From contig NIVC01003240.1 in assembly GCA_002269645.1 (NCBI GenBank), positions 1 to 64,000 on the forward strand: a stretch of DNA of 64,000 nt. Direction: 5' to 3'. Numbering within the stretch: position 1 is the first letter of the stretch; every line of letters begins with the position of its first letter. Made by a program: the position numbers and the translations under genes. Positions 30,141 through 33,100 of this stretch are shown one piece after another. The notes beneath the pieces were generated by a model. That model was not told the origin of the DNA, did not search any database, and saw nothing but the letters and a program-made list of their open reading frames with translations. The stretch comes from Macrostomum lignano (Eukaryota).

Positions 30141-33100
30141 TCCGACCCAGGTGCTCGGTGCTTCGAGTCCAGCTCGCTCCACTCCGAACAGACGAGGCCG
30201 AGGCTGCTCAGCAGCCGCACCTGCTCATCGCTAACCAAGCCGTCGTTTTCTGGCCTCTCAGAGACGCTGCGATCCACGCTGAGCAGTCGAGCGTCCTCAA
30301 GGTTGTGATTCCGCACGGTCAGGCGGGCCACCAGCTCCAGCTGGAAGTTCGCCTGGCTCGACGCGTTGGCGAAAGCATCGGCGCTCGGCCGGCACTTTGC
30401 CAGGCTGGTCAGCGACTCGGCGACCAGCTGGGAGCCGCACTCGGCGATTGGCGGGGGCGCGGGCGCCACTCGGACATTGGCTCCGCGCCCGGGCTCCGGC
30501 ACTGGCGTCTGCGCCGAGCTGTGGCTCCTCGATGGCGGTTTCTCGGCCGCTCGGATGCCCGAATCGACAGAGGCGAAGTCGAGGAAGGCGCCGCATTCGC
30601 TGGCTGTCGGTTTCTGAGTCTGTGTTGCCAAGGCGACCGCCGGGCGAACCTCTTTGAACTCGCCGGTTGTCTGTGCCGGGGTTTCCGACTTCGGAATTGG
30701 TTTCTCTGCGGCTCGAACCCCGGATTCGAGAGTAGAAATGTCTTTGAACGCGCCGCACTCTCCCAATGTTGGCGGCAGTGTCTGCGTTGTCAAGGCAACC
30801 GTCGGGCGAGCCTCTTTGAACTCTCCGAAGGTCTGTGCCGAGGTCTCAAACTTTGGAATCGATTTCTCAGCTGCTCGAACCCCAGTCTGAAGTGACGAAA
30901 AGTCTCTTAGTGCTCCACAGTCGCTGAGTTGTGGCGGTTGAGTCTGCGTTGCCAAGGCGACAGTTGGTCGAACCTCTTTGAACTCGCCAACAGTCTGAGC
31001 GGAAGTCTCGAATGTGGGCGGCGGTTTCTCAGCTGCCAGAACTCCGGTCTCCAATGAAACAAAGTCCTTGAACGCGCCGCACTCTCCAAGCGCTGGCGGC
31101 AGCGTCTGCGTTGCCAAGGCGACAGTTGGTCGAACCTCTTTGAACTCGCCGACGGTCTGCGCGGAAGTCTCGAATGTGGGCGGCGGCTGCTCCACCTTGC
31201 GAACGCCGGTACTAACGTAGTCAAGATCAACAAACGCGCAGCACTCGCTCGCCAACGACGGCTGCGTTTGCGTTGCCAAGGCAACGGTAGGGCGCACCTC
31301 TTTGAACTCGCCGATCGTCTGAGCTTGTTGGTCCGATTTGGGCGTCTGCTCCTCGGCCGCCCTGACGCCGGTGTCCTCAGAGACGAAGTCGAGGAAAGCG
31401 CCGCACTCGCTGCTCACCGGGGCGAGCGTTTGCGTCGACAGAGCGGAGGTCGGCCGGACCTCCTTGAAGTCACCCAGAGTCTGCGCGCCGCGGCTCTCCA
31501 TGTCGATATCGAGCGAAGCGCCGGAGTCTACCACCGGCCGGCGCGGCGGGTAGTTGCACTCGACCCGCGTCACCGCCCTGACGCCATCGCAGGCATCGCC
31601 GCCGATTTCGATTCGTTTCGCCGATACGAAATTTCGGTGCGGCAGGTCAACAGCCAGCCGCCGGTGCACCATCAGCTCGGCTCGGTGGATCTCCCGCTCC
31701 ACCCGGGTCGGCTGGTTCACCATCCAGTACATCCGGCTCACGTGCTGCTTCGGCTCTGTGGATGGCGACGGCTCGCCGATGGCGCTGCTGCTGCGCACGA
31801 CGCTTCGACGTCCATCGGTGACGTCGCCTGATCCAGTGGCAACTCCAGCCTGCAACAGCTGGTGCACCTCCTCGTTGACCACCGTGCTGGTCACCGTTCG
31901 CGCCGAGGCTGTGGATAGGTTTCGAGTGCGGCCCTGTGACTGCGAAATCGGTGGCTGCTGCTTGGTCAGCTTCTCCGCGTCCGTCTGGTTGGAGAACACG
32001 TACACATTGGTGCTGGAAGGCGGTTGGGTGGCGCTCATCTACTTGCTCGTGATAGCTAGCTCCTCTTCGCACCCACACTTTCACCCACCTCACTCCTCCG
32101 CCCATCTCACACTTTTGCCCACCTCATACCTCCACCCCACGTCACTCCTCCGCCCACTTCACTCCTCCGCCCACCTCACTCCTCCGCCCACCTCACTCCT
32201 CCGCCCACCTCACTCCTCCGCCCACCTCACTCCTCCGCCCGCCCACCTCACACCTCCACCCATCTCACACCTCTGCCCATCTCATACCTCCACCCACCTC
32301 ACGCTTCCGTCCACCTCACTCCTCCGCCCACCTCACTCCTCCGCCCACCTCACTCCTCCGCCCACCTCACTCCTCCGCCCACCTCACTCCTTCGACCACC
32401 TCACTCCGAACCTTTGCTCCACCGAGCTGTCCGTCTCAATGCGAATCTCCGGTACAGAGAACCCCGGCGAATTCAGAGCTGCCTCATCCTGCTTCGTCGA
32501 AGCCTCCCTGTTGGAGTCCAGCCTCCGGTTTCGCAGCCTCTCTAACGCCTCAACGTGTTCCTTAAAGAGTTTGAATATCAAAGCTATGTTTTAGCTCAGC
32601 TTGTTTTACCATTTTAGACCGCGGGCGCTTGAAATAGAAAAACGCTCACATTGAGAACTTTCAGCAGAGCTCTCGGCTGAATCACCTCCGACTCCTTTAA
32701 CGATCTGGTGCGCCTGCCACTGTTGCGCAGACTGTCATTCCGACTCAAGCCGCCGCCTCCGCTGCTGAAGCCTTCCGTAGAAGTCACCGACGACAAGGAC
32801 ACGTTGGAGAGGCGGCGCTCCCGGCTGGCGCGCACAGCCTGGTCAGACGGCGGCGCGCGTCTGGCACGGATCTGATTGAGCAGGCGTGCCATCGCTGCAG
32901 CTTCATTGCCACTCAGGTAGCACATGTAGCTGGACTCCACTTCGGACAGGAAGGTGTACAGGGAGGCCTCGGCCGCGTCCGAGTCTGTAGTGTACTGGGT
33001 TGCGGTGTGTCTGTCTGTTTTATTGACTGTCTGTCTGTCTGTCTGTCTGTCTGTCTGTCTGTCTGTCTGTCTGTCTGTCTGTCTGTCTGTCTGTCTGTCT

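Follow-up and report, generated by a model that had tools for sequence, protein, structure and literature searches.

What is the role of six tandem 54-residue repeats that the flatworm Macrostomum lignano encodes in the final exon of a plakin-like gene, and are they, as the original prediction proposed on account of their TQT and AQT triplets, a scaffold for the dynein light chain LC8 (DYNLL)? The repeats lie on the minus strand of a 64,000-nucleotide stretch of contig NIVC01003240.1 (positions 1 to 64,000; hereafter the window), where an open reading frame (ORF) of 633 amino acids (30137-32038) carries all six of them. In an exhaustive HMMER search this ORF is a 100% match to residues 494-1120 of PAA52447.1, an uncharacterised product of 1120 amino acids annotated as 'hypothetical protein'. 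The GenBank gene set for this assembly was built from a StringTie/TACO assembly of RNA-seq data, and the RNA-seq-derived model of PAA52447.1 includes the repeat exon. Tblastn exon mapping places the last-exon junction between VEQ and STNVYV, at the acceptor ttccag followed by C, and the gene is called on NIVC01003240.1. We rejected a translation start at the ATG at 32038 with a phase-0 acceptor, as the annotated RNA-based junction has its acceptor at 32014/32015. Two plus-strand ORFs (30077-30895 and 31268-31831) were likewise rejected as antisense artefacts of GC-rich coding DNA: the plus-strand ORFs over the repeat DNA are interrupted, and what looks like selection in the antisense frame only mirrors the sense third positions. 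The introns of the gene are packed with mini- and microsatellites according to the tandem-repeat listing, and an Rfam scan of the window matched no RNA family. Three gene identifiers were absent from the Macrostomum literature searched (main texts and some supplements), which gave no expression data or phenotype. The features of the locus are collected in Table 1.

Table 1. Features of the plakin-like gene and its repeat array, with positions given in the window
Feature	Position	Strand	Details
Ten upstream coding exons, whole span	32405-39814	-	gene call range, tblastn, sequence reading
First exon, short (MTAVVSRKW)	start codon at 39814	-	sequence reading
Exons 2-5, in transcription order	about 37559-37693, 37121-37195, 36639-36758, 36473-36568	-	
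Exon with spectrin-repeat-like helix (FFYEAREIG...SVQP)	35633-35846	-	part of SR4-like region; splice sites read; aligns with plectin and desmoplakin
Exon for plakin-type SH3 domain	33998-34246	-	product aa 214-296; Pfam SH3_10 E 1.5e-8; 3pe0/3r6n alignments; tblastn
Three exons 3' of the SH3 exon	about 33817-33925, 32650-32997, 32405-32578	-	
Last coding exon, plakin-like gene BOX15_Mlig023320g1	30137-32015	-	product residues 495-1120; stop codon 30137-30139
Repeat 1	31325-31486	-	ORF aa 185-238
Repeat 2	31163-31324	-	ORF aa 239-292
Repeat 3	31001-31162	-	ORF aa 293-346; exactly the unit quoted in the original prediction
Repeat 4	30839-31000	-	ORF aa 347-400
Repeat 5	30677-30838	-	ORF aa 401-454
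Repeat 6	30515-30676	-	ORF aa 455-508
Degenerate start of a seventh unit (AQTP...IAECGS), 27 aa	about 30434-30514	-	translation reading; unseen by the repeat profile
TQT 8-mer of repeat 1, SALSTQTL	31424-31447	-	score 8.3 (13th percentile of binders, 56th of non-binders)
TQT 8-mer of repeat 2, VALATQTQ	31262-31285	-	score 7.8
TQT 8-mer of repeat 3, VALATQTL	31100-31123	-	score 7.6; Leu at +2 classed as unfavourable
TQT 8-mer of repeat 4, VALATQTQ	30938-30961	-	score 7.8
TQT 8-mer of repeat 5, VALTTQTL	30776-30799	-	score 5.5
TQT 8-mer of repeat 6, VALATQTQ	30614-30637	-	score 7.8

The product consists of an N-terminal fragment resembling SR4-SH3-SR5, a Ser/Arg-rich linker and then the repeat exon. 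The plakin assignment rests on the Pfam domain SH3_10 (E 2.7e-7 in the full 1120-residue protein) and on alignments of the solved structures of plectin (3pe0; product residues 116-308, E 8e-10) and desmoplakin (3r6n; residues 101-314, E 5.6e-9). Hence the plakin domain, with its spectrin repeats and an SH3 domain inserted in SR5, is present, and its recognisable part is SR4-SH3-SR5 only. Besides SH3_10, a Pfam scan of the whole product at E values up to 1 returned only a chance match to DUF243, and it detected no calponin-homology (CH) domain, plakin-repeat (PF00681) module, GAR, coiled coil or spectrin rod. The helices predicted in a full-length AlphaFold2 model stop at residue 474, and none beyond it is long. 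The description of the protein as a plakin lacking its rod therefore holds.

The array comprises six units of exactly 54 residues (162 bp) each without a single indel, spanning ORF residues 185-508 (30515-31486), so that the range originally given (30480-31500) was right to within about 35 bp. A profile built from all six recognises six copies in the full protein and no more (E 1e-34 to 1e-37 each), in keeping with the number originally claimed. Of the 54 columns, 19 never vary, AQT, G5, FKE, RP, AL, TQT, C28, A30, D33, G40 and E45 among them. Conservation comes in blocks (columns 1-20, 27-33 and 40-46) separated by variable spacers, giving a conserved stretch of about 45 of the 54 positions at a fixed unit length. 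About 60% of the repeat residues are disorder-promoting and the spacers are Pro-rich; the mean hydropathy of 0.465, set against a charge-hydropathy boundary of 0.427, puts the repeats on the 'folded' side, if only borderline, and the net charge of a unit ranges from 0 to -5. An internal half-repeat (AQT..GEFKE versus TQT..GAFKD) was not significant, as 30% of shuffled sequences score equally high. Kinship with the intronic array at 34416-35423, whose higher-order period is likewise 162 bp, was rejected because the sequences are dissimilar, and PPxxF (Homer EVH1-type) and FxDxF-like motifs, sought by eye, either occur in only two of the six units or do not fit the pattern.

The repeat is an orphan, with relatives detectable only among the species' own gene copies. 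Among 1.84 billion representative proteins, the exhaustive HMMER search returned only the protein's own cluster; no Pfam family matched the repeat, a phmmer search of the PDB found nothing, and the best hit of a profile search of the PDB (E 1.5) is at chance level. Word-indexed searches also found nothing, whether the query was the whole ORF, the profile of the six repeats or the N-terminal 495 residues, but these negatives are weak because the protein's own database entry was missed too, and we therefore relied on the exhaustive search. The novelty claimed for the repeat thus stands against Pfam, the PDB and the proteins of other taxa.

The repeats are coding, old and maintained by purifying selection. 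DNA identity between copies is 56-75%, Tandem Repeats Finder reports a 162-bp period with 74-80% matches (85-99% in the nearby non-coding arrays), and pairwise differences at codon positions 1, 2 and 3 are 0.27, 0.19 and 0.56, respectively. Pooled pS among copies is 0.67, at which synonymous sites are near saturation, versus a pN of 0.23, and dN/dS is about 0.13-0.39 where computable; the invariant residues use varied synonymous codons. These values bear out the earlier suspicion that the array is constrained at the protein level. A second genomic copy of the gene also has six units, and between the two copies the repeats differ by seven synonymous and five non-synonymous changes (pN/pS 0.24). 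We judge the repeats to be old since synonymous sites between the units are saturated and both genomic copies hold six units.

What these constrained units might do can be approached through their predicted structure. In an AlphaFold2 model of two repeats, built on a 5-row alignment, pLDDT was 46 and secondary structure was nearly nil, with one 3-residue helical turn. When the full-length protein is modelled from its single sequence, the repeat region is predicted most confidently at the starts of repeats 2-5 (mean pLDDT of 10-residue blocks 56, 69, 66 and 58; only 49 and 46 for repeats 1 and 6), strands are predicted with moderate-to-low confidence on xFET, FKEV and TVALATQT, and the remainder of the region has a pLDDT of 24-46. 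Such low confidence is not proof of disorder, because the models had no real alignment depth.

We favour, at roughly an even chance, the explanation that the repeats, which form the conserved core of the last exon, constitute a lineage-specific multivalent binding region with a putative partner. Under this explanation the array would be a docking region that gives the plakin fragment a second binding end. Each unit would present one module of about 45 residues in strict 54-residue register, made up of a 25-residue beta-strand-prone segment, a Cys/aromatic-acidic segment (ECGAFxDF) and a TGVRAAEK segment, with a variable Pro-rich spacer after each module. The array alone would be largely unstructured, and may gain beta structure once several units have lined up on a partner that is itself repeated or oligomeric; cytoskeletal filaments, junction proteins and dimeric hubs are candidate kinds of partner. 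LC8, which would dock at the six TQT strands, counts among the candidates but is not the favoured one. A net charge of 0 to -5 per unit speaks against plain electrostatic attachment to microtubules.

As a counterpoint to the docking array, the hydropathy value and the strict unit length also fit an autonomously folded repeat. On this rival reading, which we consider unlikely, one unit by itself, or a stack of several, forms a stable new beta-rich fold, for instance a solenoid-like rod or a hairpin-plus-helix module; the array serves as the protein's spacer or rod, and TQT is a structural strand end and not a linear motif. It would account for six anciently diverged copies that do not vary in length, for 19 invariant columns over 45 positions that include Gly, Pro, Cys and aromatic residues, and for strands that the full-length model predicts periodically, at matching columns of repeats 2-6. 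However, the pLDDT of 10-residue blocks never rises above about 69, the two-repeat model built from an alignment has no strands, the sequence is rich in disorder-promoting residues with Pro-rich spacers, and it matches no solved structure or Pfam family.

The other main rival, a multivalent LC8 scaffold in which each of six TQT strands occupies one groove of an LC8 dimer and two chains are paired in parallel to replace a coiled-coil rod, is in our view improbable as well. The original prediction counted up to 13 QT sites, and the array does contain 13 [A/T]QT triplets (six TQT and seven AQT), but only the TQT triplets, one invariant copy per unit, have the valid LC8 anchor (T/V/I-Q-T/V at -1, 0 and +1). 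The seven AQT triplets carry Ala at -1, which occurs in none of 79 curated binders, the sole AQT peptide in that set (IRS1) is a non-binder, and most AQT sites have hydrophobic +2 and small -3 residues. The TQT anchors have been preserved through varied codons, and along VALATQT every second residue, namely L(-3), T(-1) and T(+1), would be buried, with Ala at -4 and -2 tolerated. Their flanking residues have precedents among known binders, namely Val-Ala at -5/-4 in BSN (VAQGTQTP), Leu at -3 in DNMT3A (KDLGIQVD), and Leu or Gln at +2 in BMF (EDKATQTL) and Znf354a (TTKSTQTQ), respectively. In addition, the strand predicted on the TQT segment by AlphaFold2 is the bound conformation of LC8 clients, and weak, non-canonical motifs can bind cooperatively in arrays, as in KANK1.

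Nevertheless, when scored against a surrogate PSSM built from the LC8Pred training set (79 binders and 32 non-binders), the six TQT 8-mers reach only 5.5-8.3 bits. These scores fall at the 8th-13th percentile among binders and at the 28th-56th among non-binders, and they do not surpass that of the median non-binder with an anchor. At -4 and -3, Ala and Leu are tolerated yet uncommon; the preferred D/S at -4 (D/S/T in 59 of the 79 known binders), K/R at -3 and D/E/P at +2 are missing, three of the six sites have Leu at +2, where hydrophobic residues are listed as unfavourable, and the ELM pattern [^P].K.TQT is matched by none of the six. At the repeat 6 site, the second copy of the gene reads VPLATQTQ for VALATQTQ (A469P), which places Pro at -4, and internal prolines disfavour binding. 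The idea that the sites zip two chains into a rod is weakened too: the TQT sites are 54 residues apart, versus linkers of 3-5 residues in documented cooperative LC8 rods (Nup159, KANK1), and a rigid rod is therefore not expected. Nor does the array show short conserved motifs joined by short variable linkers; its period is fixed without indel, and conservation extends over about 45 residues per unit, with C28, A30, D33, G40 and E45 far from TQT. In the LC8 arrays known to us, only the 8-mers are conserved. The proposal of LC8 docking is weakened, as judged from the motifs, to six weak TQT sites. An extended form of it, in which LC8 dimers recruited by the six strands zipper a rod-less plakin, ECGAFxDF and TGVRAAEK pack between the beads, and the cytolinker rod has been replaced in a flatworm lineage, seems to us distinctly less probable still.

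Finally, a functionless expansion, be it a neutrally drifting coding minisatellite or a non-coding repeat mis-annotated like its intronic neighbours, might be suspected at a locus exceptionally rich in tandem arrays (69 TRF rows in 64 kb) and with no homologue found outside the species, but it is already contradicted by the low dN/dS with saturated dS and by the coding-like pattern of codon positions, and the 633-codon frame open on the minus strand only, the copy number stable across two genomic copies and the place of the exon within an RNA-seq-based gene model leave it scarcely credible.

Should the multivalent docking array that we favour indeed serve for binding, it would illustrate how a cytolinker can be rebuilt within a lineage, the flatworm having kept only the SR4-SH3-SR5 piece while a new, selected repeat replaces the rod and the filament-binding modules. 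With LC8 as the partner, the known clients of LC8 would gain one that is structural and regularly spaced, and the published rule that cooperative rods need short linkers would be put to the test. At present, it is a species-restricted repeat in a 'hypothetical protein', worth a note and no major surprise. Transgenesis is established in M. lignano, and methods for RNAi and in situ hybridisation exist; the question is therefore experimentally tractable.

Three known systems offer a comparison. With the plakins (plectin, desmoplakin and BPAG1/MACF/Shot/VAB-10) the Macrostomum product shares the SR4-SH3-SR5 part including the diagnostic SH3_10, as well as a repeat-bearing C-terminal half where plakins have their filament-binding modules; however, it is only 1120 residues long, lacks the calponin-homology domain, rod, plakin repeats and GAR, and its C-terminal repeats show no sequence relationship with plakin repeats. 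To the LC8 clients (ASCIZ/ATMIN, Nup159, KANK1 L2, Chica and RSP3) the array is similar in its TQT triplets repeated along a low-complexity, probably flexible region, in the strand-prone motif segment, and in the idea of dimerising a protein without its own coiled coil, but differs in its non-canonical flanks that score like those of non-binders, in a spacing of 54 residues against the 3-25-residue linkers of rod-forming or cooperative arrays, and in the conservation of the whole unit at fixed length, beyond the 8-mer. A third analogy to the docking array is offered by the repeats of tau, MAP2 and MAP4, which are imperfect filament-binding repeats, disordered alone and ordered on their partner. 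They too form tandem arrays of units some tens of residues long and have conserved blocks, variable spacers and a conserved Cys-Gly, whereas they are basic and have a period of 31-32 residues, and the acidic-to-neutral Macrostomum units share no sequence similarity with them and are without the PGGG motif.

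The six consecutive 54-residue (162-bp) units of the original prediction are real: they were recovered by translation, by Tandem Repeats Finder (162-bp period, 74-80% matches) and by a six-unit profile, which detected six copies, no more and no fewer, across the whole protein (E 1e-34 to 1e-37 each), and the interval first proposed for them, 30480-31500, was off by at most about 35 bp. There are no indels among the units, the sixth is followed by the degenerate start of a seventh, and together they carry six TQT and seven AQT triplets. The open frame is identical to residues 494-1120 of the 1120-aa protein PAA52447.1/A0A267DUX3, present in public databases only as 'hypothetical protein BOX15_Mlig023320g1', whose gene is called on contig NIVC01003240.1 of the Macrostomum lignano assembly GCA_002269645.1 (contig and window coordinates are equal). 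Since the gene models held in GenBank for this assembly go back to genome-guided assembly of RNA-seq data (StringTie/TACO) with trans-splicing and poly(A) evidence (PMC5730564), the repeat exon is very probably transcribed. The coding sequence ends at the exact start of a 28-bp minisatellite (29851-30140, 10.4 copies), the stop codon (30137-30139) sitting in its first unit, and the last codons are the same in the second genomic copy (contig NIVC01000830.1).

Coordinates of the plakin-like gene, its repeat array and other features of the window
Feature	Position	Strand	Remarks
Plakin-like gene, coding sequence	39814 to 30137	minus	11 exons
Open frame	32038 to 30137	minus	633 codons
Repeat exon (last exon)	32015-30137	minus	junction between VEQ and STNVYV
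Six consecutive units	30515-31486	minus	54 residues each; ORF residues 185-508
Repeat 3	31001-31162	minus	unit quoted in the original prediction
34-bp array	11035-12380		40 copies
Interstitial telomere-like hexamers	14149-14251		CTAACC/CCCTAA variants, ~17 imperfect copies
44-bp array	18384-20858		56 copies, 99% matches
RING-finger ORF	21180-22970	minus	single exon, 597 aa, N-terminal RING finger, C-terminal half unassigned
(TGTC)n	33008-33813 and 37720-39756
24-bp intronic array	34416-35423		162-bp higher-order period
Saf4/Yju2-family splicing-factor gene	46476-48778	+	two exons; Pfam E 9e-48 and 4e-14
Open frame, 380 aa	53797-54936	minus	faint 7TM chemoreceptor (Srw) match
42-bp array	59237-60751		36 copies
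Ankyrin-repeat ORF	63573-63998	+	extends past window end

The rod-less plakin-like context claimed for the array is likewise correct. A plakin-type SH3 (SH3_10, encoded at 33998-34246) is the only domain found by Pfam, and residues ~100-315 align with SR4-SH3-SR5 of plectin (3pe0, E 8e-10) and desmoplakin (3r6n, E 5.6e-9). Pfam revealed no CH domain, spectrin or coiled-coil rod, plakin-repeat module or GAR domain, and the last helix predicted in the full-length model ends at residue 474.

The second full copy of the gene shows 25 differences over 1902 bases of the repeat exon, with seven synonymous and five non-synonymous differences within the repeats (pN/pS 0.24). As it keeps all six units, the array is older than the recent genome duplication of M. 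lignano, and the repeat copy number is stable. At least three copies are present in the assembly (NIVC01003240.1, NIVC01000830.1 and a 187.8-kb contig), in keeping with the neopolyploidy known for this species. Four further M. lignano models, drawn from an older assembly and from other copies of the gene in the genome, belong to the 90% cluster; one of them (457 aa) reads into the intron after ...KVLN and ends there, which would make it either an isoform lacking the repeats or an artefact of annotation. An older model, UniProt A0A1I8IQ65 (1766 aa), joins the RING-finger ORF, itself called as a 615-aa gene on the contig, to the plakin-like gene via small exons at ~24309-24494 and 23621-23818, probably by read-through or as a prediction artefact.

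The window is very dense in micro- and minisatellites (69 Tandem Repeats Finder rows), most of them in introns or between genes. The intron of the Saf4/Yju2-family gene contains a 33-bp minisatellite (46894-48210, ~40 copies) that is open in several reading frames, and the 380-aa frame is possibly a single-exon GPCR, judging from its faint match. A relationship between the coding unit and the 162-bp higher-order period of the intronic 24-bp array was rejected, as blastn found no similarity; the common length looks like a coincidence.

The repeat proved as novel as had been predicted. It matched no Pfam family at E-values up to 1, and the best E-value from sequence and profile searches of the PDB was 1.5. 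When 1.84 billion representative proteins were searched exhaustively with HMMER, the 1120-aa protein was the sole match, and no part of the exon had a relative outside the gene's own cluster. Word-indexed homologue searches with queries from the gene were also empty, but they carry little weight because they missed the gene's own entry, which turned up both in the exhaustive search and by cluster look-up. By sequence comparison, then, the repeat belongs to no described family and has no detectable relative beyond the gene copies of this species.

The predicted constraint at the protein level was borne out. The units are 56-75% identical in DNA and 52-78% in protein, and by Tandem Repeats Finder the coding array is 74-80% alike, versus 85-99% for non-coding arrays nearby. 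Pairwise differences at codon positions 1, 2 and 3 are 0.27, 0.19 and 0.56, pooled Nei-Gojobori estimates are pS 0.67 (near saturation) and pN 0.23, and dN/dS between units is 0.13-0.39 for pairs with correctable dS. The 19 invariant columns of the 54, written by varied synonymous codons, both QT triplets included, lie in blocks (columns 1-20; 27-33, ECGAFxD; 40-46, GVRAAEK) separated by variable, Pro-rich spacers. Given the synonymous saturation and the varied codons at invariant residues, the units were duplicated long ago and have kept their amino-acid sequence since. From this constrained repeat we infer a binding array: with about even confidence, we read the C-terminal half of this rod-less plakin-like protein as containing a lineage-specific, selectively kept multivalent docking region, whose conserved modules would gain order, probably by forming beta strands, when bound to an oligomeric or repeated partner.

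Structure predictions bear on this docking region and on an autonomously folded beta-rich repeat, which we consider unlikely but as serious a rival as LC8 (DYNLL) docking. An AlphaFold2 model of two repeats, for which the five overlapping two-repeat windows served as the alignment, has a mean pLDDT of 46 and one 3-residue helical turn as its secondary structure, which argues against a new small fold. However, mean hydropathy (0.465) slightly exceeds the charge-hydropathy boundary (0.427), towards the folded side, and in the full-length model, made without alignment and poor overall (mean pLDDT 40), predicted strands recur from unit to unit at the same columns (xFET, FKEV, TVALATQT). Confidence in the repeat region peaks at the starts of repeats 2-5 (10-residue block means 56, 69, 66 and 58), with no block anywhere in the model higher than that of repeat 3; the values for repeats 1 and 6 are only 49 and 46. 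Disorder-promoting residues make up 60% of the repeats, and net charge per unit is 0 to -5. These predictions fit an array that is mostly flexible but strand-prone in its conserved segments and, less probably, a new small fold.

For LC8, we used the rules and training set of LC8Pred (Jespersen et al. 2019, PMC6607443) and a surrogate log-odds matrix from 79 LC8Pred binders, leave-one-out calibrated, versus 32 anchor-containing non-binders. By matrix and training set, the AQT sites fit worse than the TQT sites: Ala at -1 (Q = 0) occurs in none of the 79 binders, the only AQT peptide tested (IRS1 VDTAAQTN) is a non-binder (PMC6607443), and the AQT flanks of repeats 3-6 fall at the bottom of both score distributions. 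Therefore the proposed 13 or so sites shrink to six weak TQT candidates. LC8 docking at these six strands, in a scaffold of any kind, is legitimate but weakened, and improbable in our judgement. In their favour, the sites have a correct anchor and a sufficiently large residue (Leu) at -3, Ala at -4/-2 is tolerated, and multivalency can rescue weak, non-canonical motifs, as in KANK1. On the other hand, the TQT 8-mers (SALSTQTL, VALATQTL, VALTTQTL and, in three units, VALATQTQ) score 5.5-8.3 bits (8th-13th percentile of binders, 28th-56th of non-binders), lack the preferred D/S/T at -4, K/R at -3 and D/E/P at +2, never match the ELM pattern [^P].K.TQT, and in three of the six units carry Leu at +2, a residue class listed as unfavourable (PMC6607443); one site in the second copy has gained Pro at -4, and internal prolines disfavour binding (PMC6607443). 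Moreover, about 45 of the 54 positions are kept at invariant unit length, far beyond an 8-mer, a pattern that appears unlike that of a short linear motif within a free linker. As for the two chains that the QT sites were to zip into a rod, cooperative rod-forming LC8 arrays (Nup159, KANK1) have linkers of 3-5 residues, whereas the TQT sites here are spaced 54 residues apart (counting AQT, 9 and 29 residues between 8-mers), so a rigid LC8 rod is not expected; at most, two chains could be paired by LC8 beads on long loops. That LC8 replaces the missing rod is very unlikely, and neutral expansion of the array is contradicted by the dN/dS values.

Should LC8 bind, the array would be a new, atypical LC8 client. 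This mechanism is not favoured by the motif analysis, and the taxonomic range of the repeat is narrow. In kind, the repeat protein is an altered plakin architecture not described before: while lacking the rod, CH, plakin repeats and GAR of plakins such as plectin and desmoplakin, it has the SR4-SH3-SR5 piece in common with them.
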